Below, piece after piece: positions 1 to 18,332 of a stretch of DNA of 18,332 nucleotides. Numbering within the stretch: position 1 is the stretch's first letter; every line of letters starts with the position of its first letter. The DNA comes from Macrostomum lignano (Eukaryota). The position numbers and the translations under genes were made by a program. The stretch spans positions 1 through 18,332 of the forward strand of contig NIVC01003433.1 in the NCBI GenBank assembly GCA_002269645.1, read 5' to 3'. The notes below the pieces were generated by a model, which did not search any database, was not told where the DNA came from, and saw nothing but the letters and a program-made list of their open reading frames with translations.

Positions 1-866
1 AGAAGGGAGGGTAGGAGATTGGAGATAGGAGATTGGAGGATAGGAGATTGGAGGATAGGAGATTGGAGGATAGGAGAATTGGAGGATAGGAGATTGGAGG
101 ATAGGAGATTGGAGGATAGGAGATTGGGAGGATAGGAGATTGGAGGATAGGAGATTGGAGGATAGAGATTGGAGGGTATGAGATTGGAGGGTAGGAGATT
201 GGAGGATAGGAGATTGGAGGATAGGAGATAGAGGGTAGGAGATTGGAGGATAGGAGATTGGAGGATAGGAGATAGAGGGTAGGAGAGAAGAGAGGGTAGG
301 AGACGGAAGGGTAGGACATTGGAGGATAGGAGATTGAGAGAGATAGGAGATTGGAGGATAGGAGATTGGAGGATAGGAGATCGAAGATAGGAGATTGGAG
401 GATAGGAGATTGGAGGATAGGAGATTGGAGGATAGGAGATTGGAGGATAGGAGATTGGAGGATAGGAGATAGAGGGTAGGAGAGAAGAGAGGTAGGAGAC
501 GGAAGGGTAGGACATTGGAGGATAGGAGATTGGAGGATAGGAGATTGGAGGATAGGAGACTGGAGGATAGGAGATTGGAGGATATGATTGGAGGATAGGA
601 GATTGGAGGATAGGAGATTGGAGGATAGGAGATTGGAGGATAGGAGATTGGAGGATAGGAGATTGGAGATAGGAGATTGGAGGATAGGAGATTGGAGGAT
701 AGGAGATTGGAGGATAGGAGATTGGAGGATAGGAGATTGGAGGATAGGAGATTGGAGGATAGGAGATTGGAGGATAGGAGATTGGAGGATAGGAGATTGG
801 AGGATAGGAGATTGGAGGATAGGGAATTGGAGGATAGGAGATTGGAGGATAGGAGATTGGAGGATA
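1..866. repeat. 15-bp purine-rich minisatellite (GGAGATTGGAGGATA)n, running off the window start
   Basis: Unit read directly; over 50 copies, homogeneous from about 525-866 and more variable upstream. The EDRRL/IGDWR ORFs are translations of the unit. Confidence 0.97.
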
Positions 867-1343
867 GAAGAGAGGTGCAGTGTCAGGGCGCAGGAAGAGA
901 GAGTGAGGACAAGGTGAGTGAGATGCTCACAGATTGGAGACGAGATAGCCGCCAGTGAAGAGTTGCGACATGCAAGAATGAAGCGCAGTGCCTGTATGAA
1001 GATGAGTGCCGAATGGTCAGAGAAAGAGGGAGGCAGGAATATACGAAAGAAGCAACAGGTGAGAATGTGAGCACAATGAATGGACAAAGCAAACGGGAGA
1101 GGCCGGTGGCTTGGCAATCTGCCATCTGAGTTTAATGTTTCATAAACACTTTTGTGCCAGTCTTCACTTTATGCAGCGGGTTATTAGGGCTGTTTGCAGT
1201 GAACCAGTGCTCAGTTAATGTGCTTTTTTTACAGCGAGGCGCGCGCTTATTATGAATTTTTTGCACAACCAATTAGAGTTTACACCGGAGAGAAAAAAGT
1301 ATATATTGTTTGGCATCAAATGCTTTGAGGTCTCTCTCTGCAG

Positions 1344-3616
1344 AGTCAAGAATAAATCTGCTGCCTCACCATTGGCGTTTCACGGCAGGTGAAGACGCTT
1401 AATCAGATAATTTGAAATGCCTGTCACGGTGAAGGATGTGCAGAAGGTGAGAGAGAGAGAGAGAGATTGACAGGTGCTGCAATTTTCTGGTCAATGATTC
1501 TCATGATTCACTAGCCACCAGTCCCTTTTCATGTTCTTTTCATGTATTACCAGCCCTTCTTTTTATATTCTTGTCATGTGCTATAAGTCCTCATATTCTT
1601 GTCATGTGCTACCAGTCCTCCTTTTTATGTTCTTGTCATGTGCTACCAGTTCTCCTTTTTATGTTCTTGTCATGTGCTACCAGTCCTTCTCATATTCTTG
1701 TCATGTGCTACCAGTCCTTTATATTCTTGTCATGTGCTACCAGCCCTTCTCATATTCTTGTCATGTGCTACCAGTCCTTCTCATATTCTTGTCATGTGCT
1801 ACCAGTCCTTCTCATATTCTTGTCATGTGCTACCAGCCCTTCTCATATTCTTGTCATGTGCTACCAGCCCTTCTCATATTCTTGTCATGTGCTACCAGTC
1901 CTCCTTTTTATGTTCTTGTCATGTGCTACGAGTCCTTCTCATATTCTTGTCATGTGCTACCAGTCCTTCTCATGTTCCTGTCACGTGACTGAGTTGTTGT
2001 CAATCAAACCAAAACCTTCAATTTCAGCGCCTGAAGCACGGCGGCAAACTGCACAACTGCACAGCCCAGACACCCGCTTTGAGCTGCCCTTCGACTTGAA
2101 GCGGCTGGAAGGTGAGGCGTCCGCTAGAATGTGGGACTTCGGAGAGGCACTGGGAACCTGCATCTCATTCCCTCATCTCAGTCCTTCATCTCATTCTCTC
2201 ATCGCATTCCCTCATCGCATTCCCTCATCTCAGTTCCTCATCTCGCATTCCTTCATCTCAGTCCTTCATCTCACGGCCTCTCATCTCAGTCCCTCATCTC
2301 AGTCCCTCATCTCAGTCCCTCATCTCAGTCCCTCATCTCAGTCTCTCATCTCATTCCCTCATCTCAGTCCTTCATCTCATTCCCTCATCTCACAGTCTCT
2401 CATCTCAGCCTCTCATCTCAGTCCCTCATCTCAGTCCCTCATCTCAGTCCCTCATCTCATTCTCTCATCGCATTCCCTCATCGCATTCCCTCATCTCAGT
2501 TCCTCATCTCGCAGTCCTTCATCTCATTCCCTCATCTCACAGTCTCTCATCTCAGCCTCTCATCTCAGTCCCTCATCTCAGTCCCTCATCTCAGTCCCTC
2601 ATCTCAGTCTCTCATCTCAGTCCCTCATCTCACAGTCCCTTATCTCGCAGTTCTTCATCTCAGTCTTTCATCTGAGTCCCTACTCTCACAGAGCAGCTTT
2701 CCCCACTCTTAAAAGCTAACAAACTGTGATTGACAGCTCCGATTTCTAAGGCAGATCTCCCTGCGCAACCTGACCGTCTCTTCGGCAAGCTTTAACGGTT
2801 GACTGAGTAGCAGAAAACAGCATTCGAATCGAATTTTGCGGTCACAAAGCTCTGGAGCTGACTGGGGCTGACTAGAACTGCACTTTAAAGCATATCGTAT
2901 TTCACGTCCCACTGAAGCCAGGCAGTCGATAGATGTATGCGCATAAATTAGAGGGAGGGAATCAGGAAACGATTACTTTTTAGTCCTAAAAAATTCAGGT
3001 ACTTGATAAAAAAACTGCTCTCCCTCTCTCTCTCTGCGTTTTTACCATTTGCTAGAAATACGGGTGGTAAAAAATTCTCAGTATTCTACTAAATTCTCTC
3101 ATCAGTAGTGTGGAACGAAAAAGTAGCCATTTCTATGTCTATCGCAAAACATTGCCAATCAGGCCTGGACGCCAAGGATTACCTGCGCCAGTACGCCGTG
3201 GTGTCCCAACAACCGTATCGTGCTGTACCAGCGGCTATTCCAGAAGTTTCGCAATCCGACAACCAACCTGATCGAGTCCAGGGAGCTGGACAAGTGCATC
3301 GGCGACCTGCTGATCGAGGGGCAACGTCCCCCGGGACCGGCTGGCTCAGCTCCGGGACCTGACTGGCACCGCTGATCTCGAGCAGCTCGAGCCACAGCTA
3401 TTCTACGCGTTCTGCGCCGTTGTTGAAAGGCTGGTCGCTGGCAAGTCGGCCGGCGCCTGTGGCGGCACACAAAAAGGGAGTACACAGAAACGACTAGGCG
3501 ATTTGGAAGAGTGCCGGCGGCAGGCGCTGGAATCAGCGGACTTTGCCGGCCTGCAGTACAAGCTGCGCGATGTCAACCTCAAGGAAGGACTGGCGCGGCT
3601 GCTGGCTGCCTTGTGA
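1344..3616 (+). CDS. Spliced gene (exons about 1344-1446, 2028-2111, 3163-3616) for an uncharacterised protein with a degenerate EF-hand-like helical pair; 5' end probably upstream; frameshifted in this sequence
   Basis: Acceptors ctgcag|1344, tttcag|2028, atcag|3163; donors 1446|gtgaga and 2111|gtgagg. The phase-1 junction G|GC is consistent. Correcting single-base homopolymer indels gives ...FEMPVTVKDVQKRLKARRQTAQLHSPDTRFELPFDLKRLEGLDAKDYLRQYAVVSNNRIVLYQRLFQKFRNPTTNLIESRELDKCIGDLLIEGNVPRDRLAQLRDLTGTADLEQLEPQLFYAFCAVVERLV...ALESADFAGLQYKLRDVNLKEGLARLLAAL*, with TGA at 3614-3616. Codon usage is GC3-rich like the other exons. Exon 1 is the least certain. Confidence 0.7.
1518..1987. repeat. 31-34-bp intronic minisatellite (TTCTTGTCATGTGCTACCAGTCCTTCTCATA)n, about 14 copies
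   Basis: Unit read directly; two variant classes (..TTCTCATA and ..CTCCTTTTTATG). Confidence 0.96.
2158..2690. repeat. 13-bp intronic minisatellite (CTCATCTCAGTCC)n, about 40 variant copies
   Basis: Unit read directly; variant blocks such as CATTCCCTCATCGCATTCCCTCATCTCAGTTCC recur at about 2205 and 2470. Confidence 0.96.
3163..3616 (+). CDS. Terminal coding exon of the uncharacterised EF-hand-like gene
   Basis: Continuous protein-like frame after removing one extra C (about 3206) and one extra G (about 3320); ends LARLLAAL-TGA; AATAAA at 4199 and 4278 downstream. Confidence 0.78.
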
Positions 3617-3629
3617 CCCGGGGTGTCGG

Positions 3630-3978
3630 GCGGAGTGATGCGGGTGCCTAGCCATAGACTGGGTTGGCGGAGCGGAGTGAGGTGGGTGTATGGCCATAGA
3701 TTGGGTTGGCGGAGCGGAGTGAGGTGGATGTATAGCTATAGACTGGGTTGGAGAGCGGAGTGAGGTGGGTGTCTAGCCATAGACTGGGTTAGCGGAGCGG
3801 AGTGAGGTGGTTCCTAGCCATAGACGGGTTAGCGGAGCGGAGTGAGGTGGGTTCCTAGCCATAGACGGGGTTAGCGGAGCGGAGTGAGGTGGGTTCCTAG
3901 CCATAGACTGGGTGGCGAAGCGGAGTGAGGTGGGCGTATAAACATAGACTGGGTTGGCGAAGCGAAGTGAGGTGGGTG
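3630..3978. repeat. 42-bp minisatellite (AGCCATAGACTGGGTTAGCGGAGCGGAGTGAGGTGGGTTCCT)n, about 8 copies, in the putative 3'UTR
   Basis: Unit read directly; begins 14 bp after the stop codon at 3616. Confidence 0.95.
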
Positions 3979-4493
3979 TGCAGCTAATTTTGATTAATTC
4001 AGGCATGTTACTATTAACTTTTTCAGTATTTATTTTTTTCAGTGAATTTCTGCAACAAACTACTTCTGGTTGCGTCAATTACCTCGGTGCAGATGTTGCT
4101 CTTAATTTTTATTGAATTAAACCTACATGTGGTGTCTATTGTTGGATTGTATCGACGCTGGGTTTAATTTACAGATAGCTATTATCGTATAAGTTGTAAA
4201 TAAACGTCAATTTATTATTATCTTAAAGCATTCGAGAACAATGCATTACACAAAGTACGAGCGTATGTGTTGGCGATAATAAAATGTATTAATTTTGGTT
4301 GTTGTACTTGCGTGAAAGAGAAACACAGCAGCCGCTTACGCATATGCTTTAAAAACTATTGAAACTTGTATTTCTGAAGCTGAAGATGACCTCTTCGAAT
4401 CCTTTCTTTTCTAGGAATCTTTCTAACTCGAACCTTTCATAATAGCATCTTCGAATCTTTCCTATGACCCGATTAAATATTTTCTAAAGAACT

Positions 4494-4653
4494 TCTTCTA
4501 ATGCATCCTATGCCCTCTTCTAATGCATCCTATGCCCTCTTCGAATGCATCCTACGCCCTCTTCTAATGCATCCTATGCCCTCTTCGAATGCATCCTACG
4601 CCCTCTTCTAATGCATCCTATGCCCTCTTCGAATGCATCCTATGCCCTATTCT
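4494..4653. repeat. 22-bp minisatellite TCTTC(T/G)AATGCATCCTA(T/C)GCCC x7
   Basis: Seven units at 4494, 4516, 4538, 4560, 4582, 4604 and 4626, plus a partial unit. Confidence 0.96.
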
Positions 4654-5209
4654 AATTGGGCTCTCTGAATCCCCTGTCCTAACTAGAAGCGGCTCAGAGC
4701 AGAGAAGCCGCACCCAAAGTCCTGAGTCGTGAGTCACCTTAGCAGCAACCGGTTTTGCATAGCGCGCTTCCCGCCGCCTTAGCACAGAGGAATCCCATTC
4801 CGGGAATTCCAGTCTGAGTGATTTTGCTTTTGATCAAAGCCTCTGCCTCACCCCCTCCTCCAGTGCGGCTCTTGAGCTCTCCAGGAAATGAGTCTCAGAA
4901 ACTGAAAGCAGAAGACGGCAGAAGCCAGAAAGCCGTTGTTCCTCTACGGGGTTGGGCGAAGCAAATAGCCACTTGAGTCATGTTTCTATTTTTAGCTCAC
5001 AATGCTGTCCAAGCCGATTCCCCTTTACTTCGGCCCCCTCGATGCATTTTCTAGCGGGGAAAACCGGCACTGAATGCCACATCGCACAAAAGAGAAAAGC
5101 TGCTTTTTTGGCTCAATGCCAGATCTCTTCTAATGGCTTTTTAAAGTTACAAGGTGATTTTTAGGTTGAGTATTTCAGTATAAGGTTTGCCACTGCAGTT
5201 TGATAAAAA

Positions 5210-5546
<337 letters not shown>

Positions 5547-6286
5547 TGAATGGAATTCATTTGGCAGCAAGTCATCATGATCAGTTCATCCACCCCTAAT
5601 CCGATATATTTAGCACCGAAGAGGCTGCTCGGATGCAGACCGGGCTGAAACTGTCATCAAGAGATTAAGCGGGGCGATATGATGGTCGGTTGGCCTAAAA
5701 AAACCCAATCGGAATTGCGTGGCGGCGCAAGTCCTCATATTTCCAGCCTCCCGGATGGCGGACTTTAAGGCCGGCCCAGTCAATATTTGTCTGCAGCCTG
5801 GGAGTCGCTCTGTGCCAGACGGAGCCTCCTAGTTTGCGTCACAGCGAGCGAATCAGGTTGGCAACTGGGGCGGATTTAGAACCGATTAAGGACAAACCAA
5901 ACAGAGGATTAATCGCCCACCGCCCCTTTTTCCCCCACAATAAAAGCTGCCGCTATTCTTAGCTACTTGGGTGGATAAAAATAGCTGCCCGCCTGACAAG
6001 AGTCTCTCGGCGAGATTCGCGTACGCGGAGTGGATCCGCAACCTCCATAATAGGAGTGTGCACCCCCCCCCTGGCGCCCACCCCGGCCGCGAGGCTATCA
6101 GGGAAATAGCCCCCGTTGCCAGCTAGCGGAGGCCTATCTAGAGGGGGGGTGGCTCAGCCAGCCAGCTCTGCTCTACAGTTTAGCTGACTGACGGGCGGAT
6201 CCAGGAAGAGGGTGAGGGAGGGGGGTGGAGAAAATCGAGAGAGGAAGTTTCTGCGGGAAAGGGGAGTTGAGGGCTACAAGAGATGC

Positions 6287-6294
6287 TATAAAAA
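6287..6294 (+). promoter_or_regulatory. Candidate TATA box for the PH-like gene
   Basis: gcTATAAAAAggg in a GC-rich context, about 100 bp upstream of ATG 6385. Confidence 0.5.
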
Positions 6295-6384
6295 GGGACC
6301 CGCATCGATGTGGGAAATTTTTCCCAAACTGAAGCAGCAATTCGTAACAGTTTAGAGCAGGGCAGCTGAACAGACATTTTATTG

Positions 6385-6852
6385 ATGTGCTTTCAAGACG
6401 ACGCCAAAGCGATGAAGCTGAGCACGTCGGGCGCCGCGGTGCAGCGGCGGAGCAGCCGGGCGCTCATCACCCTGGTGCGGCCGGACCATCTGGCCACCCT
6501 GGCCGGTCGGCTCTGCCTGTTCGGCGGCGGCGGCGACGCCTCTGGCGGGCCCGGCTTCGTGGTGGTCTTCAGTGAGGCCACCGAGGAGGCGGCCGGGCAG
6601 CCGCTGGGCTGCCTGAGCCTTCGCGGGCTCAGCGCAGAGCCGCTGGGCAGACGGAAGCTCAAACTGGCCAGGCGAGGCGAAGACGGAGTTGGCCGGGCCT
6701 ACTCGGTGGTCACCTTCGACAGCGAGGAGGAGCGGCGCGTCTGGCTGCGGCTGCTGGCCGACTGCCGGCTGTCCGGGCCGGGCCTGCGGCCAATCAGCGA
6801 GGACGAGGCCGCCTGCTACTGCGGCTCCGCCAATGTTGGCGTTGTGCGATAA
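6385..6852 (+). CDS. Small protein consisting essentially of one PH-like domain (ATG 6385 or 6412; could alternatively be the last exon of a longer gene via tttcaag|6398)
   Basis: Very GC-rich 155-codon ORF. Pattern of beta-strands (LAGRLCLF, FVVVFSE, PLGCLSLRGLSAE, KLKL, YSVVTF) followed by the PH C-terminal helix motif FDSEEERRVWLRLL. AATAAA at 7162 and 7425. Confidence 0.75.
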   Translation: MCFQDDAKAMKLSTSGAAVQRRSSRALITLVRPDHLATLAGRLCLFGGGGDASGGPGFVVVFSEATEEAAGQPLGCLSLRGLSAEPLGRRKLKLARRGEDGVGRAYSVVTFDSEEERRVWLRLLADCRLSGPGLRPISEDEAACYCGSANVGVVR

Positions 6853-7824
6853 TTTCTATACAGTGTCGGATTTGAATTTGCGCCCGAATATTTCTGTTTT
6901 AATCGAGCTGTCAGGACTTAATGACTCAGTGGTGCCTTTGAAAGAAATTCAAGATACAGTTAGCTGTACAATACATGTATATGTGCGGCATTCTTGTCCC
7001 GTATATAAAACTTTTTCCGTTCAATGCGTAACTATAGGGAATGCTACACTTAATTTGTTTGTCCTTCAACTGTTATCAATTGCACTACTTCATGTTAAAT
7101 TGACCGCAATATTGCTGACTTATATAGTTGTAAATTTGTTTAAACTATTAGATTTTAACACAATAAAATAGCACTGCAACTAGATGTACTTCAACTATCC
7201 CGCAGTAATTTTGAGTTCCCATTTCGTTGTCAAATACGAAATAATTTCGCCATTTCGAGTTATTTCTACTAATAGTAGGCAAAAATACACAAGTTCAGAA
7301 TTTGAGCGCGGCCAAAAAAATTTAAAAGCTCAACAACAACTTCTCTGGAGAGAAATGCTCTGGGTGCAATGAGTGCTATAGTCTCTGACAGTGCACTGAT
7401 AAAATACACGAGGACTTGAGGTTTAATAAAAACCATAATGTACTGTATACTCGCAGTCTGTGACTGACCCCTAGCTATGCCTCACCGCGTGTTCTCACGC
7501 TAGCTAACATTATTCGCTTATGAAATTCGCTTCTCTGCGCCAACAATGCAGACTCCGTTTTTATTAGAGAAAATGAGTCTGTCTTATCTGGCTGTTTGTC
7601 TGAAGAAATCCGAAAGAAACGAACTTTGGCGATAATTACTTTAAAAATGTTAGACAATTAGATAAACATCTATCATTTGTTTAAAAGACAATTTGAATTC
7701 AATGGCAGTTTTGTGATAAGAATAGGAAATATCCCCCACAATAGCACATCACTTGCTCTGCTTGAAGAAAACTGGAATGCTGGTGAAACTCGTCACGTCG
7801 ATATCGTAAGCAACGAATTGCAGC

Positions 7825-8057
7825 TCAAAGTGGCTTTGCGGTGCTCCGTTGATGAAGTGCATAGCTTTGCTGATGGTCCGCTGAAGACACCGCAAACTCC
7901 TGTGCCAGCGGAGTGAAACGGAACGCATAGAGATTGATGGGCTACCATCCCCTCCAACCAAACCATCCTCACTTACCAAGCACAGATCCTTGTTCTCCTT
8001 GACCTCACAATCCAGCACTGTAGTACCGCTTTGGTATTTCTGCACTTTCTTATAAGT
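7825..8057 (-). CDS. ATP11: Putative ATP11 C-terminal exons 8057-7977 (TYKKVQKYQSGTTVLDCEVKENKDLCL) and 7899-7825 (EFAVSSADHQQSYALHQRSTAKPL*)
   Basis: ttgcag|8057 acceptor; 7977|gtaagt donor; cacag|7899 acceptor. All phase 0; introns of 79 and 77 bp resemble the 84-bp first intron. Minus-strand AATAAA at 7560-7565. Confidence 0.55.
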
Positions 8058-11000
8058 CTGCAAGTTTTTATAGAAATTTTAAATAATATCATGACATCAT
8101 CGCAAAGAGTTCTCCAGCCAGACATTTTGAACAAACATTTTTCGCAATTTTCAACTCAAGTTCGGTGCGCCAGTCTTGCAGGAATCGAATGGCCAAGTCT
8201 GGCGCCACGGCCAGCACCAAAACGCACAGCAGCAGCAGCCAGGACGAGGGCTGCCCGCTCAGATCAAAGTAAGTCCAGTAGTAAGTGAGCTGCTTGGATA
8301 GAAAAGCGGTTGAGATCCCGCTGTAGGCACTGAGCAGAATCACGTATGTGACTGTGGAGAACAGGAAACCAATGAGCGTTGGCACACTGAAGCTGTAGGT
8401 GATGAGCAGGATGCGAGTGGTGACGCACACCAGAACGCAGGTGATCACCACCGTGCCGAACGCGTAGACATCGTACGCGTAGCCGTTCGAGCCGACCCAG
8501 TCGTTGGTCAGAAACACGGCCGCTACGCCAAAAAAGCAGCAGGCCGAGTGCCAGAGGCCCAGCGCGCACCACAGGGCGAGTTGGCCCCAGGACAGGCGCC
8601 GATTGTTAGCGATGCCTCGATAGAGACGTGGCTCGGACTCCAACCGCTGTCGAGGCAGGTGCTGTTCAAACAAGCCGTAGAGAAAAATCGGCAATGAAGT
8701 CATGGTCATGTTGTAGAGAATGAAGAACGCCGTGTCGTACATTGGCTGGGCGCTGAATGCGGAGAAAAACGCGAAGAAAAAGGGAGGCATAACGAACACA
8801 ATGCTCTTGTAAAAACAGTACAGAACGAGATTTGAGAGTCGAATGTAGAACAGGTGGCCGTGGAACAGCAGGGCGGTGCGAGTGAACGCGAACCTGGCGA
8901 ATGCGTAGTCGGCGTTGAGAGCGGCGGCCCGGCCCTCCTTGCCGAAGATGCCGATTCCAACGTGGGCCTCTCGGATCATGAGACGTCGTTGGCTCCGTCG
9001 CCGATCGCGCAGGTGGTTGGCTCGGGCCGAACTCCATGCTTCACCATGGCGATTATTCTGGCCTTCTGCAGAGGCGTGCAGCGGCAGCACAAAACTGCGG
9101 CTGTCTTGCAGCACAGTTCTAGGAACGAGTCCCTCAGGTCGGGGTGCTCATCGGACAAAATAAATTGCAGCGAGTCACCGTCGACAATCGTGCAGAAATT
9201 TATCGGAATTGACACTTTGGACGCCTCAATCATCTCATGTCCGCTGCTCACACTCTCGCGGCAGACATCCGCCGACAGCTGCTCCACAATGCGGATGCGC
9301 TGCATGGATTCCACAAAGTGTCCCGATGACAGGCTGATGTTTTCGGCTGTCTCGCGCTTGTCGCCGGTGAGCACCCACACCTGGATGCCTGCCTCGCGCA
9401 GATCCGTCAGCGTCTCGCACACGCCTGGTTGCAGCTCGTCTTCGATAGCTGTGAGGCCCAGCGCTTCGAGGCCTTGCTCTATCGACCTGGTCGAAGAGAG
9501 GTTTATGGGAAACCTGTGGTGATGTAGTACAAGGGTCCTAAATCTACAGGTTGCGACTGCGAACTAGGTTGTGGAATTTCTGCACCTTTAAAAAATATCA
9601 TTTTAGCCTACTGACCATTTCAGACTTTCAGCTGTGGATTCGATCTGTTATCTCATCGGATCTGCTTGAAGTCTCTAACCGTTATTGTTGCCTTCTTCTG
9701 TACCATTACCTACTTAAGACCAAATGTTGCACTAAAAAGTACTCACATGTACACTTCCGTCAGCTTGGCATCTCTGTTGGCTACATCTATCTCGGCGATG
9801 GAGAATTGCAACTTTATCTGCTCATACTCGGCTTCTGTCAGCTCTTTGTGTCCGATTGCCAGCACTCTCAGACCTTGGACGGCGAATTCGGCGGAGAACT
9901 TCACAATAGAATCCTTGTCTCCTGTGCAGCACTTCTCCAGCATTGTGCTTTCGGCTCCTTTCGTTAGCAGCCAATAAGCGCCGTCGGCTCTCTGCACGAT
10001 GACCGACATGCACTTGCGCTCTGAATCAAACTCGAGCACGTGCAGTAGCCGGAATTGCTGAACAATGCACTCGCCATTGGCACTAGACAGGCTGACTGTG
10101 CTGACCCCGCCCTCAGTGCCGTGGAAAATTATCCCAAAACTACGGGCGGCCTCAACAAAAGCCTTCTCATCTGGAGAGCTGGCCTGGTAGGTGTAATCCT
10201 CCGCTTCAAGTGTAGAGAATGCATACCGATTTTGCTCATCATTGCCATACGCCGTAGGCCGTTCAACTCGAATGGTGTGGCACAGGGCCAAAACGGTAAA
10301 GAACAGCAGCTGTCGGTCTCCCAGCCTCTCGCACCGACTCAGTCGTTGTCCACCGCAGCTGTCTGTCTCCCAGAGTTCACCACTGAATTCACTGAACGTA
10401 CGTCCGTCTACCGAGCAGTGTCTGAAGGTCATTTTGTTCTCGGTAAGAGTGCCCGTTTTGTCCGAAAATAAGTACTGAACTTGTCCGAGTTCCTCATTCA
10501 AATCGGATGTGTTTGCTCTCGCTGGCATTTTCTCGCCCGTTTCTGGATCCTCGTAGTACATGCTCAAGTCATACTCAATAAACTTCGAGCTAACAAACTT
10601 CGTTACCTCCATTGTCACATATAGTGCAATAGGAATCATGTAGTTGAACAGTATTAAGTAGCCCATAAAATCTTGAATTATTCGATATGGTGTCAATTGC
10701 TCGACTGGCAGGTACCAAGCCCCAGTGACTGTTGTTTTATGATTCGCGTAGCTCCATTTCATAGCAGAGCAAACAATTACCATAAACAGTAGAACGCCCA
10801 GGAGGCACACAAGAAATTTGTCCAGGCGACGCTCAATGACGGACTTTTTGGAACGGCCGTACTGCGAATTCAGCTGCATCTTGGTCTCTTGACCAGTGTA
10901 CACGGCCACTCCCATTACATGCTTGGTGTTCCGCAGCACTGCCCCGCGAAGAAGAAGGTTCTTGATGCTCAGGGAAACTTGGTACGGCAATCCCGTGCTC

Positions 11001-11788
11001 AATCGGACACTGATATTTCCCTTAAATTTGTACAGATCTGCAGTGGGCTGCTCGCAGTCTATCTGAGCACGCAGGTTTGCACCTATGTCGGCGGCTGTCC
11101 TCAGGTGTCTGGTCAGCTCCACGGAGTGCACAGTCTTTAAGTTGGACTCGCCGTCTAAGTTAGCTGTCGTTATGCGACATTCTCCTACAAGCGGACCAAT
11201 GATGCTAAACTTTAAGCTATTTTCCTGAAAAAAAGTATAGAACTAAGTGTATTTTCTTATAGGCTCACCTGTGTCCTCAGATGACGAAAGCAGAATCAGG
11301 TCACAGGGAAAGCTTTCATTTTGATGTATCCGTACAACATCGCCAACCTGAATCTCTAGGGACTTTATATCAACTAATCGATTCTCCCTGACAACTTTAA
11401 CAGGAGCCAAATTTACTGTGTCGTCAGACTTGTGCCTCAGAATGTCTTCGTAGGCCTGTTTGACTGCAGTGGCACCGAGCACAAAAGCCAGAGGCACAAA
11501 TGATGAGGTTGGGCTCACCGGAGCATCAATAAGCAATTGAGTTGTGGCCGCAATTAAAAAGTAAAAGTTGGCTACGCGAGTGAATTGTTCCAACATATTC
11601 TTTATTAGAAAGTTGTAGACAGTGTAGCGAGATGTGACAACCCGATTGTCTGGATATAATTGTCCTTCTAGTAGTGCATCACTCAATCCGATGCGCTTGT
11701 GGTTGACGAAGACAGTTCTGAACTCTCCATAGAAGACAGGTTTTTGCACGCCGAAGAAGGCTAAAAGGTTCTCAAGCCATCGGTGCAT
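7825..11788 (-). CDS. ATP11: P4-type ATPase phospholipid flippase, ATP11-like; exons 11788-11269, 11184-9747, 9486-8137, then probably 8057-7977 and 7899-7825 (about 1154 aa), or read-through to the stop at 8089 (about 1118 aa)
   Basis: Motifs VVTSRYT, FYFL..TQLLIDAPVSP..PL, KQAYEDILRHKSD, TANLDGESNLK, DKTGTLTEN (10448-10462), YQASSPDE, FDSERKCMS, TKGAE, TAIEDELQ, VWVLTGDKRETA, CCRCTPLQK, IGDGANDVS/MI and GIGIFGKEG. The TM1-2 signature matches ATP11 rather than ATP8/ATP10. Intron phases (1, 2, 0, 0) all reconcile. One missing base at about 8980. Confidence 0.95.
8137..9486 (-). CDS. ATP11: ATP11-like coding exon 3 (P domain, TM5-10), containing a 1-nt deletion at about 8980
   Basis: SIEQGLEALGLTAIEDELQPGV...GDGANDVS, then one-base shift to MIREAHVGIG...LAIRFLQDW; putative phase-0 donor AAT|gtttgt at 8136. 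Confidence 0.93.
9747..11184 (-). CDS. ATP11: ATP11-like coding exon 2 (A domain, TM3-4, P and N domains)
   Basis: Starts G|GA-ECRITTANLDGESN; ends TAC AT|gtgagt at 9746; 260-bp intron to ccag|9486. Confidence 0.95.
11269..11788 (-). CDS. ATP11: ATP11-like coding exon 1 (N-terminus, TM1-2, start of the A domain)
   Basis: ATG at 11788; donor AG|gtgag at 11268; 84-bp intron to ttgtag|11184. Confidence 0.93.
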
Positions 11789-13899
11789 TTTTGGCAGTTT
11801 CTAATGTCGAAGAATTTATGTAGTTTTAGCTCGTAACTATAAAGCGTTTATAGTTGACCTGAAAATGTTCGAGTACATGTGGAATTTTAATTTATGCAGA
11901 GATAAGCCACCTAGAAAAATTGATACGAATCAATGATTTTCTGGTAATGCTGTATGTGCAAATTTGCTCGTACCTGAAGGCACTACACTCAGATATTCAC
12001 ATCAGATTTTTTTCGATTGTTCAATTAGTCCAAATAGAAATTTGGTTGCCATTGGTCATTGGCTTGCGAATTTACGATGGATAATTCTCTGCTGTTAAAA
12101 TTCATGAAATTGTTGCGATGTGGAGTTCTGTAATAGTATGTCAGTCCGTCATCGTGTAGTATGCTTGTTGATGGAGTTCGAATTTCAAGTGGTATTAATT
12201 AAGAATGGATTTCACTTACCTTCAAGTTCTTACAAATGCTTTATTATTGAGTTTATTCAAAAACAACAAAAATGTGCAGATTTGCTGCCAAAAAAGAAAA
12301 CGGTACCATCTATTGGTACGGAGCTAGCTGGTTTTGTGAATTTAAATCACTGCCAAAAACTGATGCCGCTATTAAAACCACAAAAAAATCTGTAATAACT
12401 GAAGTAATTTTTTTCAGTGTGCACAGAGTCACTTACTTTTTTATTATGAATATCCTAAGCCCTTACGTAATTTTTTCAGTTAAAAAAGGTGATCAAAATC
12501 ATAAGTAATCATGCCAATGGTTCGTGTTGATCGGCATTTGATACCAATGGTGTTGCAACTTACTGGTGATTGTCTGATTGGAATGGCACTGCCACATCTA
12601 ACCCCTCGACTTACTTTTTCTCTGATTTACTAGGCCTATTATTTTCGACTTTTATTGATGATGCTTAAAATCTAACCAATGATTCTAGCGGTCTGTTGGC
12701 TTGGCTGTGTGGTGTTGTTGCTAGTCATTGGGACTCAGTCATGCTAAGTTGTTATTGCTAGCGATGACGATTAGACTAGTTAACTTGACTTAGGACTAAT
12801 TCAGTAGATTTCTTTTTGCATTATTTGGCTAAAAAGTAACTCATAACGAGTTATTTAGCAGAAATGCATAAATCACTATGTATGCTAGGAACTTAGTACC
12901 TACTTGCTATTGTCCTAGTGATTAATTGCAAAGCTATAGGAGTAGGAAGCTACAGCTTCTAATGTTTTGGCATTTGGAGTCTAGTTGGGCTTACTTTAGG
13001 CATATTTCTACATCATTAGCTATACATTTTTAATAAGCCTATTAGTATTATATTAATTACTGTAAATTTTTAAGACTCATACATATAATAGGCCTTAAGG
13101 CTTTAATCTAATTTAACAAGGCCTATTTTAAACTTAAATCAAAGACAACTAAAACACTTAGGTCTAGGACACAAAATAAGCAAAATCATAATAAAAAAGT
13201 TAAGTTAGAGGCAGTTAAAATTGTTGGCAACCAGTTTTTTATATATTAAATAGGCTGCATAGGCCTACATTACAATTAATGATCAGCTTGGTTGTTTAAA
13301 AGACTAAGGTCCCATTTCTATTATTTTTGCTTCAAAAGGTTTAGTAGAAAGTTCTCTTAAAGGTTTTTTAAATATTAAATATTTTCTCATTTTCTTTGAC
13401 TTTTAGTAGGCCTAGTATTAGTAAAAAAAAGCTATATTGTTGTAGGTGTCTTTACTATTATTGTATTTTTATTCCGCTATGCCACCAAGTTGTCGCAGGG
13501 ATATTTCTGTCTGTTAAGATCCCACTGCTGTTACCAAGTTGTACCAGGGGGTGTTTAACTATTGTAGACTATCCTACCGATGTCACCAAGTTGTCGTAGG
13601 GCTATCCACTTCCTAGTTTATAATCACGCTGCTGCTTTAAGTTGTTGTAATTTAGAATAGTTATTACTCCATAAAATTACTTAGTCAATTATTGTTTCTT
13701 AGAAAACATTAGGTCTAGAATTCTAATCTAAGGACTCCTTGAATCTATGCAAGTCGCCCTGGTAGCAGTGTCGAGCGGCAAACACTGGTCTACATGTAGT
13801 TATGAATCTCACTACTATTATTATTACTACTATTAATTCCCTATATTTAGTTGCAGGCTCCCTGGGAAGGAGTTGCCCGACTCGTCAACCGTCTATTTT

Positions 13900-14132
13900 T
13901 GGCTTCTCACAGCTTTCCTGGCCTCTTACGGCTTTTTCTGGCTTCTTACAGCTTTCCTGGCCTCTTACGGCTTTTTCTGGCTTCTTACAGCTTTCCTGGC
14001 CTCTTACGGCTTTTTCTGGCTTCTTACAGCTTTCCTGGCCTCTTACGGCTTTTTCTGGCTTCTTACAGCTTTCCTGGCCTCTTACGGCTTTTTCTGGCTT
14101 CTTACAGCTTTTCTTACTTCTAACAGCTTTCT
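13900..14132. repeat. 39-bp minisatellite (TGGCTTCTTACAGCTTTCCTGGCCTCTTACGGCTTTTTC)n, about 6 copies
   Basis: Unit read directly; built from two related 19/20-bp halves. Confidence 0.96.
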
Positions 14133-15598
14133 CTCCTGTCTTGCTTTCCAGTGACTAAGACAACACATTTTGCTTTCTTAACCGAATCAAGGAAACGGTT
14201 ATATGAAGGAAACGGAAAATGTGGTTTTAAAGCCCGAAAAACGCTTGTATTTATAGTCTCAAAAAGGGGAGGTGGGGTGCGCGGGTCGTGAATAAACAAA
14301 TTTCTTTATAGCGGTTTAACAAAATAATTTTCCCAAATAAAACAAACCCATTAAAACAAAGATTTCGTTCTAACAAAAATGCGTTGTTAAGCGTAGTTTG
14401 GCGGAAATTTAAAATCATGGTTATGTGAATATTAAACACATCGGGCCTGCCTCAATATTATAGAGTACAATATTTAAGCACATAAGAAAAACACAAAGAA
14501 AAGGTTTAAACTCAATATAGTATCTATAAAATTATAAAATCAAACTCAATATAACCTAATACAAGTTAGTTTGCCAGACATATATAGTACAATATGTAGA
14601 ATATAGCCTACAAGGTATAGGGTACACTGGTACAGTGCAGTTTACTACTACTGTCTGCAATGCTACATAAGTAAATAAATGAATGATAAATCAATAGCAA
14701 AAGAGTGAGAGCAGAAGAAAAGGAAGAGAAATAAGGTACTTCCATTTTTCAATAAGCTTAAACACACAAAGTGTGCTATCCCCTCTCCTTGTCCTTCAGT
14801 GTGGTGGTGCATAGGTAAGTCACAACTAAGTTGTACCAAATGGATGAAATTTTGAGGTTGGGCATATATAACCTATCTAAGAAGAAACTCATATGAAGGT
14901 CTATAATTATATAGAAAAAACTGGGGTTGGGGTATTAAGTGCAGATATATATTTAAGCATGGGATAAATGGGCCTATGAAAAGAAAAAAGTTAAAAAATC
15001 TAAAATGATGCTTAAGCAAGGCAACTTGTACTTGAAGAATAGAATATATAAAGAATTAGTATTAAATAGAATACATTTTAGGAAGAACCCAGATAAGAAA
15101 CAACTGAACTATATATGAAAGAATTTAGTTTAGAAAATTAATAATTCCAAAGTTGAATATTTAAAAATATACTGCAAATTCATTGGCCTCCTAGTTTATA
15201 AGTCTCAAATCAAAACTAACATATGCATCATAAATATATAAATAGAAAAGTTTGGGGTAAAAAAACTTGAATTAAAAGTGTTTTATCTACATTGAATAAA
15301 AATAAGTAGACTTACCAAGAATGATAGCAATCAATGTATGCTTATCAATTTCTAAATCCTTGACAACTACTTAGAATATTACCCATTTGTAAAAAGTATA
15401 TACTAAATCTTAAATTAAAAATTAAAAATTATATATGATGCATTAGTAGCTCATATTGCTTTTTAAAATACTTTAAATGCTTTAACTTGCATTAAATAAG
15501 AATTTTCAAATAGAAGACATTTCCATCTAATTGTGGTAGAGTTGCTCGCTTAATTAATAGCAAATAAATAAAGCTTAAGATCAACATTTATGGCGAAA

Positions 15599-15636
15599 AC
15601 CAACGCGTTTCAACCCACTAGGGCCGTCGTCAGGGT
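15599..15636 (-). ncRNA. Minimal type I hammerhead ribozyme, identical copy in the left arm
   Basis: Exact reverse complement of 16230-16267. Confidence 0.8.
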
Positions 15637-15850
15637 ATATTTTATCACTGAACGAAACACTCAATATAAATAAGCAAACGATTGTACTATCTCAAGTGTC
15701 AAATTGAAAACGGGAGGGTAACCAATGTACGAAAAACATAAAAAACTAGGGGTTGGAGTTAAGCGAGAATAATGAGAGAGAGAGAGAGAGAGAGAGAAGG
15801 CAAACAGATGTAAAAAAACAAAATGTACGCGCAACAAAAAATAGTCAAAC

Positions 15851-15958
15851 TCAAAACACCCTAAGAAGGTGGCCCACACCACTATGTAGCAATTGCACAT
15901 TGAGACTGGGATTTTGAGCTTTGATGTGCAGCACTTCAAGAATGCTAAGCTTGAATTC
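15851..15958 (-). pseudogene. C-terminal remnant of a PLE GIY-YIG endonuclease: EFKLSILEVLHIKAQNPSLNVQLLHSGVGHLLRVF*
   Basis: Hand translation (this frame is not in the ORF track). Matches the L.I.E.L.I....P.LN.Q......L..F* ending typical of endonuclease-bearing Penelope-like ORFs. Confidence 0.8.
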
Positions 15959-16229
15959 AGAGATTGAATTGAATTCAGAGAGCTACATAGTGGTGCGGGC
16001 CACCTTCTTAGGGTGTTTTGAGTTTGACTATTTTTTGTTGCGCGTACATTTTGTTTTTTTACATCTGTTTGCCTTCTCTCTCTCTCTCTCTCATTATTCT
16101 CGCTTAACTCCAACCCCTAGTTTTTTATGTTTTTTGTACATTGGTTACCCTCCCGTTTTCAATTTGACACTTGAGATAGTACAATCGTTTGCTTATTTAT
16201 ATTGAGTGTTTTGTTCAGTGATAAAATAT

Positions 16230-16267
16230 ACCCTGACGACGGCCCTAGTGGGTTGAAACGCGTTGGT
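16230..16267 (+). ncRNA. Minimal type I hammerhead ribozyme (PLE-associated)
   Basis: ACC-CTGACGA-C-GGCCC-TAGT-GGGTT-GAAA-CGCG-TT-GGT: core CUGANGA and GAAA, stem II GGCCC/GGGUU, palindromic stem III ACGCGU, stem I ACC/GGU, predicted cleavage after GUU at 16264. Confidence 0.8.
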
Positions 16268-18332
16268 TTTCGCCATAAATGTTGATCTTAAGCTTTATTT
16301 CCATCTAAATTATTAAAAATAAAATGATTAAACTTAGTAATTTGGTCACAATAGACAAAGAAGCTAAGAAATAAGCAAAGAAATCTATATTAGCATTATT
16401 TTGGTTTTTAGCAATGCCACATGCTATACTAGTGCTAATGGCTCATTCCATATAAGCACGGTTGTAACATGACAGGCTATTTTTACTTATAATATGAAAT
16501 CTAATAATAGAATATACTAAACCAATATTTTAAATGAAAGATTATTTTGTCTAGAATATATTTATAGAGTTTCATATAGATATCATCATTAGTATAGATG
16601 CTATTAAACCTTAAATGACACTTATGGTCGTAACCACATTTGACATATATAAACTAAAAGATAAAAGTCTTACAACATTTTTCATTTTTGATATTTTGCA
16701 ATACATTTTTAAAATTTGACTAAGAACATCTGTAGAAATCATACTCTTTTATTAGAATATATAAACTCAAAAGGCAACAAAGATACAAAAAAGGCAGCCT
16801 TATGGTCGTAACATTATGGTTGTAACATATTTTTTTCTGTCAATTCAGTAACTGAGGTACTAATACATAAAAAATATAATCGATTATTTGGTCACCAATG
16901 ATTTTATCTGATGATGCAAGTACTATACTTTTATCTATAGTTTGTTTCAACCTTCAAAAGCTTTCTATTTGTTTTTAAAAGGTACAAAATCTTAATGGTG
17001 TCTTTTGCTTTGAAAAATGTCCAAATTTTTACAAAGATGACTTTTTGCTAATTGATCCAACATTTAATCTAATACTAATCCAACATTTTACCACTCCTTT
17101 ATTCTTAGATTGTATATATTGCACATAAAAACAGTTGGTAAAAATAGGCTAATAAGGCAATGGCAAGCAAAAATATTGACTTTTTTCTATTTTCCAAATG
17201 TCTATCTTATATGGAATGAGCCTAATGGCTATATATTAGTAGTAGTAGCACTGTGTGTATTGCTTAGCCTAGTCATTTCCTAGTCTGCTCATGCGCATAT
17301 TATATGCATATTACACACATCAATTGTGCATAATATACATATAATTAATGCATGGGAAACACATTTTGTGTCACTTTATATAAATTTATGCGCATATAGA
17401 TATACGCAAAATACACAAATAAGTTACACATAAAATGTATATTTTATATACACTTTACACAAATAATATCCACATATGTGTATTATTATTCCATTAAATA
17501 CACAACTAAAAGATAATAATTAAGGCATAGATATTGCATGTCAGGCTTTTTTTAATAGATGGAGGCTTGCAAAATGCGCCGGTAAATTTCTTATAAGTTG
17601 ATATTGATATTGGTATTGGTATAAGTTGAAAACTAATAATACACTCATAGATATATTTAAATAGATATACATATACAAGAAGCAAATTCATTGTTTTAAA
17701 TTGATAGTGAACAAAACAATAGAGATATTTAGAAGTCTACTAACAGGATATAGAAAATTACAATAGACCCCTACTTTAAAGCCTTGCTGTAGACCATGAT
17801 AGAAGTCTGTGGCAACACCCTGCAGCTTTAGCAGGCTGGCAAGACATGCTCTATGCATATCCACATATGCTATAATGCCAAGCAAGTCTTCTAAGCAGAC
17901 AATGATTGGCTTGGAAGCCATGGTAATACAATAATAGATAGGAGAGCTAGTCAGACAAATCAACTAGCTTACCAAAGCCAATTGCCGACTAGGATGTCCC
18001 CACTTGCCAACAGGCTGAGATGCCAAAATGCTTTGAGGAGGGCAACCAGAGAAAGACTCTAGACCAGCTAACAAAATTGTAGCAAGGACTGATTATTGAC
18101 CTACTGATTGAAACTGATTCCTCAATCATGTGTAGCATGAAACCCAATGGTATAAGGGTAAACCCAACCTCCCTCCACTTCTCTATCTTATCTCTCTGCT
18201 TCTATTGCTGCTTTTGTGTATGAGGGTCATCCTAAAAGTTCTTTGTATCACACTGAATTCCTATAAACTTCCTAATAAAATAAAAATCTTAAACTCCTAT
18301 AAACTGGCACCAATTTTAAAGAAACTGCACAC

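Follow-up and report, generated by a model that had tools for sequence, protein, structure and literature searches.

Does a long, nearly perfect hairpin that carries a hammerhead ribozyme motif on each arm represent an RNA device or the residue of a transposition event? We addressed this question for contig NIVC01003433.1 of the Macrostomum lignano assembly GCA_002269645.1, from which a stretch of 18,332 nucleotides (positions 1 to 18,332, forward strand; the whole of it is hereafter called the window) was analysed computationally. A preliminary description of this DNA had pointed to twin outward-facing minimal hammerheads on the arms of a hairpin, and both strands indeed read as described. 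It had also suggested that the inverted layout could act as a self-cleavage switch and as a source of small RNAs. We arrived at a different explanation of the layout: the locus very likely reflects one fairly recent insertion of a non-autonomous Penelope-like element (PLE) or of a short element that the PLE machinery mobilised. The hairpin and its two outward-facing ribozymes are most likely by-products of integration and not a purpose-built RNA switch.

The boundaries of the insertion were defined by a target-site duplication (TSD). The sequence ATTTCCATCTAA occurs as an exact direct repeat on both sides of a 766-bp insert (15531-16296). The length of the TSD is 8-12 bp, since ATTT is common to the element end, the start of the tail and the target, leaving an uncertainty of 4 nt at the boundary. 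Direct repeats of at least 12 nt were found in 6 of 5000 shuffled flank pairs and in 6 of 4686 pairs of random segments (p ~0.001). Between the TSD copies, two pairs of inverted segments (15566-15791/16075-16300 and 15780-15890/15982-16092), each 99% complementary, form one interrupted inverted repeat of ~325 nt per arm that spans 735 bp (15566-16300). The preliminary description had placed the hairpin at 15599-16267. The hairpin is real, but both the repeat and the insert extend beyond these limits on either side. The insert is a head-to-head join of two 5'-truncated copies of the 3' region of an element, with both 3' ends facing outward and the hammerhead located ~30 nt from the 3' end. An additional extension, the tail, is found at the left end only (Table 1).

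Table 1 Features of the insertion and of the surrounding window (positions in the window)
Feature	Position	Strand	Remarks
Left TSD copy ATTTCCATCTAA	15519-15530	.	12 bp; first 4 nt (ATTT) ambiguous with element end
One-sided 3' extension (tail)	15531-15569	-	35-39 nt; between left TSD and end of inverted repeat; no right counterpart
Left arm, 5'-truncated element copy	15570-15890	-	3' end leftward; inverted repeat, 99% complementary
Minimal type-I hammerhead, left copy	15636-15599	-	sequence identical to right copy; predicted cut after 15602
(GA)12 microsatellite	15774-15797	.	inside left arm; right-arm (TC)9 at 16075-16092; sole length difference between arms
Centre, non-repeated	15891-15981	.	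91 nt, hairpin loop; junction of both 5'-truncated ends; degenerate palindrome only
Right arm, 5'-truncated element copy	15982-16296	+	3' end rightward, no tail; directly adjoins right TSD
Minimal type-I hammerhead, right copy	16230-16267	+	predicted cut after U17 = 16264
ATG-initiated frame	16279-16296	+	ATG 15 nt past the cut site
Right TSD copy ATTTCCATCTAA	16297-16308	.	12 bp; exact direct repeat
snR86 / MIR408 matches	15600-16268 and 15769-16103		artefacts; Rfam, permissive filters
P4-ATPase (phospholipid flippase, ATP11/IF-like) exons	11243-11788 (PhoLip_ATPase_N), 9743-11131, 8089-9114 (PhoLip_ATPase_C)	-	

The composition of the insert and the differences between its arms bear on its age. 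Base-by-base alignment of the arms revealed three substitutions (15654/16212, 15731/16135 and 15876/15996) and a 6-nt length change, (GA)3. At each of these substitutions, one arm has CpG where the other has CpA. The ratio of observed to expected CpG is 0.95 in the insert and 0.98 in the left arm, unlike the surrounding intergenic DNA (12000-18332), which is strongly CpG-depleted (0.48); the GC content of the insert is 38% vs 27% in the flanks. This fits foreign, recently arrived DNA that is decaying neutrally by deamination of CpG. The CpG depletion around the insert, together with arm substitutions that are all CpG to CpA, further suggests CpG methylation in the host and a young age of the insert.

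Both arms carry the string ACC-CUGACGA-C-GGCCC-UAGU-GGGUU-GAAA-CGCG-U-U, followed by GGU. In standard numbering, it comprises C3-A9, an extra C (16240 and 15626), helix II with G10.1-U11.1, G12-A14, A15.1, C15.2, a central GC, G16.2, U16.1 and U17. The conserved boxes, the A15.1-U16.1 pair and H17 are present at 16233-16264 (+) and 15633-15602 (-). The earlier numbering of the cut site (after 16264) is right, and the self-complementary stem III (ACGCGU) and the 3-bp stem I (ACC/GGU) are as claimed; the former lies within an 8-nt palindrome, AACGCGUU. Helix II has 5 bp (GGCCC/GGGUU), closed at 10.1-11.1 by a G-U wobble rather than the G-C that is usual in nearly all natural examples. The wobble is possibly a CpG-decay product of C11.1. 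In the minimum free energy (MFE) fold, the extra C pairs with G12. As the two motifs are a single sequence copied by the inverted repeat, they do not count as two independent observations.

Structure prediction indicates that helix III is formable solely between two copies, as the monomer would offer just 2 bp around a 2-nt loop, which cannot form. When two strands were folded together, the intermolecular ACGCGU helix formed with a pair probability of 0.97-1.00. The double-hammerhead structure reached -21.1 kcal/mol vs -32.3 kcal/mol for the MFE of the dimer, and the 3-bp helix I was not predicted to be stable.

The hammerhead motif is real and lies far above chance. Admittedly, the bare boxes (CTGANGA...GAAA) are not significant by themselves, with 5 occurrences in the window vs 1.5 expected. 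We therefore used a descriptor of minimal hammerheads that combines the boxes with a directly adjoining helix II (4 bp or more, 0-1 extra nt), a self-complementary A...U block for helix III, H17 and a helix I of 3 bp or more. In the window it matched both known sites and no others, and it gave no match on either strand of 3000 windows simulated with a first-order Markov model. As an empirical null, we collected 93 matches to CTGANGA-N13-18-GAAACGCGTT in viral contigs of IMG/VR. These look like chance occurrences: a helix II of at least 4 bp was present in none of them and a helix I of at least 3 bp in two.

Additional evidence was obtained from relatives of the motif in metagenomes. Exact patterns of the window's family had no match in bacterial or archaeal genomes or in metagenomes. 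The relaxed pattern CTGANGA-N-GGCCC-NNNN-GGGYY-GAAA matched at least 120 metagenome contigs, where at most 10 matches would be expected by chance for up to ~1e12 bases of even composition (the collection states no size). All counts on these relatives given here and below are among the matches listed. Most of them are AT-rich eukaryotic, largely arthropod-type DNA; for example, an insect-type 7tm_7 chemoreceptor is encoded on contig L101 and a NACHT-ankyrin protein on L211. We set aside a smaller number of hammerheads of bacterial or phage type, whose helix I is closed. The palindrome ACATGT, followed by H17 and the helix I partner, was present in 99 of 136 motifs that had not been filtered for palindromy. 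Compared with ACGCGT in the window, this is, at the sequence level, a compensatory change of the two central helix III positions that keeps the palindrome.

We then aligned 78 distinct sequences, of which 77 were relatives filtered on palindromy. Helix II and helix III carry no weight for covariation, because they are fixed by the search pattern and the filter. Helix I lies outside the search pattern, and its three core-proximal pairs show standard pairing in 86-92% of the sequences, while slid registers are paired in 27-42%. One of these pairs is AU in 32 sequences vs GC in 31, and the observed covariation score was reached in none of 500 shuffles. The wobble of the window at 10.1-11.1 is shared by 7 of the 78 sequences, the other 71 having C11.1. 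When a covariance model was trained on the 77 relatives alone, it recovered exactly the two copies in the window (31.1 bits, E ~1e-7; next best 10.8). The score is partly circular, which counts against it, because the search that yielded the relatives was itself based on the core and helix II of the window; agreement in these two parts is thus circular.

The relatives also revealed how such motifs are arranged. All 15 opposite-strand pairs face outward, with the minus-strand copy to the left of the plus-strand copy and a spacing of 30-1150 bp. Tails could be recognised in two sub-families (ACGTACACACAACGGGATGGAAAACCCCCAATTTAG and GGAACACATCGGGACTAATAAAGTTAA) and were present on exactly one arm in 11 of 14 pairs and on both arms in none. 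TSDs were identified in L131 (TGGATGATAAGT, 12 bp), L161 (AAACCTTGG, 9 bp) and L167 (TGCTTTTCC, 9 bp), placed as in the window: one copy adjoins the bare arm and the other the tail. One further inverted pair, in L188 (7301-8448 plus flanks), has arms that are 100% identical throughout the stretches compared (400 nt to the outside of the motifs and 1200 nt to the inside); on sequence grounds, it would be a large palindrome of very recent origin or else an artefact of assembly.

The tails may also retain coding sequence. In both sub-families (L094-L213), the tails, ~70-95 nt downstream of the motifs, start with ATG and encode a conserved MENPQFR or MEHIGTNKVK, directly after which the similarity between copies ends. 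These tails therefore probably hold the first codons of the open reading frame (ORF) of an autonomous element. In the window, the left-copy frame (ATG at 15587-15585, minus strand) stays open across the whole tail for 19 codons (MLILSFIYLLLIKRATLPQ). Weak as evidence on its own, this frame parallels the coding tails of both sub-families and the arrangement in PLEs, such as those of Adineta vaga, in which the pseudo-long terminal repeat (pLTR) and the tail hold the first ORF codons (PMC3846280).

These features were compared with those of known PLEs. Minimal hammerheads were defined in the pLTRs of PLEs (Cervera & De la Pena 2014, PMC4209133) as motifs in which one nucleotide between A9 and 10.1 is left unpaired, helix II is long and helix I is short and open (PMC4209133; review PMC6765202). 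Their palindromic 15.x-16.x segment implies action as a dimer, and their activity in vitro is very low (PMC4209133); in the review PMC6765202, cleavage of the dimer is credited to Lunse, Weinberg & Breaker 2017. The preliminary description had assigned the window's motifs to this dimer-dependent class, and their architecture agrees with both sources. They share the type-I topology, the open short helix I, the CUGANGA and GAAA boxes, the unpaired nucleotide between A9 and 10.1, a helix II above the canonical 4 bp and a palindromic helix III that pairs only between copies. Known copies are solitary or paired on opposite strands, and pairs ~100-700 bp apart have already been reported (PMC4209133). 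The motif in the window differs in three respects: a G-U pair instead of the highly conserved G-C at 10.1-11.1; a C as the extra nucleotide, able to pair with G12, where at least 90% of the 77 aligned relatives have T; and the palindrome ACGCGU vs ACAUGU in all 77.

The insertion follows the grammar described for PLEs, in which a 5'-truncated copy is often adjacent to an inverted 5'-truncated copy, mostly head-to-head (PMC3846280, PMC8557442). A tail of 30-40 bp, often at one end only (PMC3846280, PMC8557442, PMC11167929), and a TSD of ~8-10 bp (PMC3846280, PMC8557442) complete this picture. Head-to-head inverted pLTRs are known (Arkhipova et al. 2013, PMC3846280; Craig et al. 2021, PMC8557442), and a one-sided 30-40-nt tail together with inversion in head-to-head orientation is held to be unique to PLEs (PMC11167929, PMC8557442). 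The window shares the head-to-head inverted copies, the one-end extension of 35-39 nt, the TSD of ~10 bp and an ATG frame running from the repeat into the tail. Unlike a canonical PLE insertion, it has no internal ORF for reverse transcriptase (RT) and GIY-YIG endonuclease and no direct pLTR, just two truncated 3' regions within 766 bp.

How could such a structure arise? The element's endonuclease would nick both target strands, and the 3'-OH at each nick would prime reverse transcription near the 3' end of the element RNA, in a form of twin priming. Of the two priming events, one would begin downstream of the tail and the second would begin upstream. Joining of both partial cDNAs in the middle of the insert would then give an irregular centre with both 3' ends outward, and the staggered nicks would leave a TSD of 8-12 bp. 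Such a twin-priming origin is inferred from the literature: in 2024, the enzyme of a lizard PLE was reported to cleave and extend both target strands in vitro, with reverse transcription starting from two internal RNA sites that bracket the tail (PMC11167929). A start at either of these sites would account for a tail on one arm only. The hammerhead would simply be carried along, because it sits ~30 nt from the element's 3' end.

Cleavage by the motif at this locus is predicted to be unlikely. As hypothesised in the literature, the ribozyme's role in the family would be the dimer-dependent, protein-assisted processing of tandem element transcripts. The hammerhead of the lizard PLE cleaves only with protein assistance and is dispensable for insertion in vitro (PMC11167929). 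An inverted pair provides no second sense copy in cis, as the second copy is antisense, and is thus the worst arrangement for a dimer-dependent ribozyme. In addition, the monomer lacks helix III, and the weak 3-bp helix I, the extra C pairing with G12 and the wobble at 10.1-11.1 would all work against activity. Finally, any transcript across both arms is predicted to fold into a duplex of ~325 bp: the RNA fold of the region is a single hairpin of -605 kcal/mol vs -175 +/- 7 for shuffled sequences (z = -64.6). The model fold thus agrees with the preliminary description in that a read-through transcript would bury its sense ribozyme in the duplex.

Does this burial have a function? The hairpin might mask the ribozyme as an on/off switch and be diced into small RNAs that silence the family, an explanation that is compatible with an origin as by-product but that we regard as improbable. 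Long inverted repeats are known sources of endogenous small interfering RNAs (siRNAs) in animals, and any transcript spanning the locus is predicted to form a hairpin of 325 bp that is 99% paired. The likeness to endogenous siRNA loci is this long, near-perfect intramolecular duplex, whereas they differ in that the structure of the window is accounted for by the integration mechanism alone. In the rotifer Adineta vaga, copies of Penelope yield abundant, mostly antisense small RNAs whose polarity switches across the inverted halves (PMC3846280), and by analogy the production of small RNAs from the locus is plausible. Its use as a switch does not follow. Integration explains the inverted layout through the TSD and the one-sided tail, and the outward twin recurs in 15 of 15 related pairs at spacings of 30-1150 bp, which fits a mechanical by-product. 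Signs of selection are absent, the arms decaying at CpG sites and in the microsatellite, and an antisense partner is of no use to a dimer-dependent ribozyme. We give still less weight to secondary co-option of the twin, in which a spanning transcript, for example toward the flippase gene described below, would fold into the 325-bp hairpin and give rise to small RNAs against the PLE family while the sense hammerhead remains locked. If so, cleavage by the ribozyme would be confined to transcripts with their start inside an arm.

Two further explanations concern the nature of the element itself. It is hardly probable that the locus derives from a hammerhead-bearing, non-autonomous retroposon without PLE enzymes, be it a non-LTR retrozyme or a SINE-like element (short interspersed nuclear element) of the Sm-alpha type known from schistosomes, with copying by a long interspersed nuclear element (LINE) or through circular RNA. 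In favour of this reading, no PLE enzyme is linked to the motifs, most relatives are short and solitary, and one lies inside a LINE. In that contig (L164, 1-1672), the one RT that could be resolved near a relative is of LINE type (FADD motif; RVT_1, E = 9e-22), and its ORF is split by a short hammerhead-bearing element with a tail, i.e., a nested insertion. Another contig (L129, 47-216) shows a tandem, retrozyme-like arrangement, in which one strand holds two minimal hammerheads at a distance of 144 nt. Non-LTR retrozymes resemble the insert in being short and non-coding, with type-I hammerheads that need two copies, and in being probably derived from PLE pLTRs (PMC7229834; preprint 10.64898/2026.07.22.740005). 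However, they are head-to-tail tandems giving circular RNAs, and they are defined by tandem direct repeats (PMC7229834). The window contains no tandem head-to-tail array but only two copies, on opposite strands, with no unit-length RNA between sense ribozymes. It also lacks a poly(A) or LINE-like 3' end, whereas it has the one-sided tail and the head-to-head inversion described as unique to PLEs (PMC11167929, PMC8557442). A preprint traces animal retrozymes to PLE pLTRs in any case (10.64898/2026.07.22.740005). Least probable is that the hammerhead-like string is fortuitous and that the locus arose as a foldback or MITE-type (miniature inverted-repeat transposable element) DNA transposon, by local duplication of a palindromic kind or through an error of assembly. 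Foldback elements, too, are marked by long terminal inverted repeats and a TSD, and the lack of a hammerhead match in Rfam could be read in the same way. Yet the insert has asymmetric ends, just one of which bears a tail, and a 12-bp TSD is atypical of DNA transposons. The motif is far above chance and is recognised by the covariance model built from relatives. An assembly artefact would not show three CpG substitutions, a microsatellite length change, an asymmetric centre and a TSD.

Besides the partial circularity of the model score, several observations weigh against a PLE-type insertion with a genuine hammerhead. Neither an RT nor a GIY-YIG endonuclease is encoded by the ORFs of the window, insert included, and ORFs inside the hairpin had no match in Pfam. 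From the absence of such an ORF it follows that the insertion is dead and non-autonomous, at most a truncated copy, and not an autonomous PLE. Likewise, no PLE RT was found beside any relative (141 ORFs scanned, 7 with RVT_1, 0 with GIY-YIG), and ORFs directly downstream of the related motifs had no match in Pfam. As the motif has no linked enzyme, be it in the window or at the related loci, the assignment to PLEs rests on structural hallmarks and on the literature, and the twin-priming step leans on in vitro work with the lizard element. No second copy of the window's family was found. When the 766-bp insert was compared with the related loci by blastn, only the ribozyme core and (GA)n matched, so that the window represents a different family, which, from the sequences, probably belongs to a different host. 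The G10.1-U11.1 wobble and the C able to pair with G12 deviate from the hammerhead consensus. Finally, hammerhead families were absent from the Rfam matches to the window, to a 971-nt slice and to a 96-nt slice, both at gathering score and with E values up to 10. A hammerhead search, named in the preliminary description as a check, thus succeeded in part: the descriptor and the relatives-built covariance model find both copies, but the hammerhead models of Rfam find none. This negative weighs little, because the same library likewise reported no hammerhead for the minimal hammerheads of six related loci, so that this class lies outside the coverage of its models.

With permissive filters, Rfam did return two other matches to the hairpin, both of which were rejected as artefacts. 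The first was snR86 (RF01272, a yeast H/ACA snoRNA; 137 bits vs a gathering score of 120), which reflects a long perfect hairpin fitted to a long-hairpin model; the window shows no conservation of the snR86 sequence, and the match was not reported at the gathering threshold with standard filters. The second, MIR408 (25-31 bits), resulted from (GA)n aligning to the purine-rich arm of the miRNA.

The bacterial and phage hammerheads that had been set aside (L105, L138, L201, L204, L218, L223, L224 and others) share the GGCCC/GGGCC helix II, and in them A9 is likewise followed by an extra nucleotide, U. Their helix I is a closed, GC-rich hairpin, and they lie ~15-35 nt upstream of an ATG. None of the three that were scanned was reported by Rfam at gathering score. 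Two IMG/VR contigs of 300-301 nt (L219 and L220) each have a hammerhead on the plus strand. In L219, Rfam identified a Hairpin ribozyme on the minus strand (75 bits), the arrangement of a small circular RNA resembling nepovirus satellites.

Elsewhere in the window, the one recognisable gene encodes a P4-ATPase, whose start codon lies 3.7 kb downstream (minus strand) of the left end of the insert. A protein search with its 462-aa exon gave best matches that are just 44% identical and scattered across metazoans, and an exact-protein look-up returned no record for the first flippase exon or for the hairpin ORF. The window is also densely populated by minisatellites (6-871, 1517-1987, 2161-2688, 3630-3978, 4494-4656, 5211-5546 and 13896-14111), with units comprising a 15-mer (x58), a 31/96-mer, a 13/147-mer, a 42-mer, a 22-mer, (AGAC)85 and a 39-mer (x5.6). 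Long ORFs over these minisatellites are repeat artefacts.

Together, the locus is most likely a dead, non-autonomous, PLE-type twin insertion that carries the minimal hammerhead of its family, and insertions of this kind are already known. Its main value is for annotation, as a reading of the raw sequence can catch a true minimal hammerhead that Rfam models miss. Moreover, a TSD, a one-sided tail and outward 3' ends identify a PLE-type insertion even where no RT is present. The locus would open a new biological question only if the hairpin proves to be transcribed and processed, and otherwise none. For PLEs, the comparison set provides independent support for the view that the endonuclease primes on both target strands, from two alternative start sites, as 15 of 15 pairs face outward and none carries both tails.

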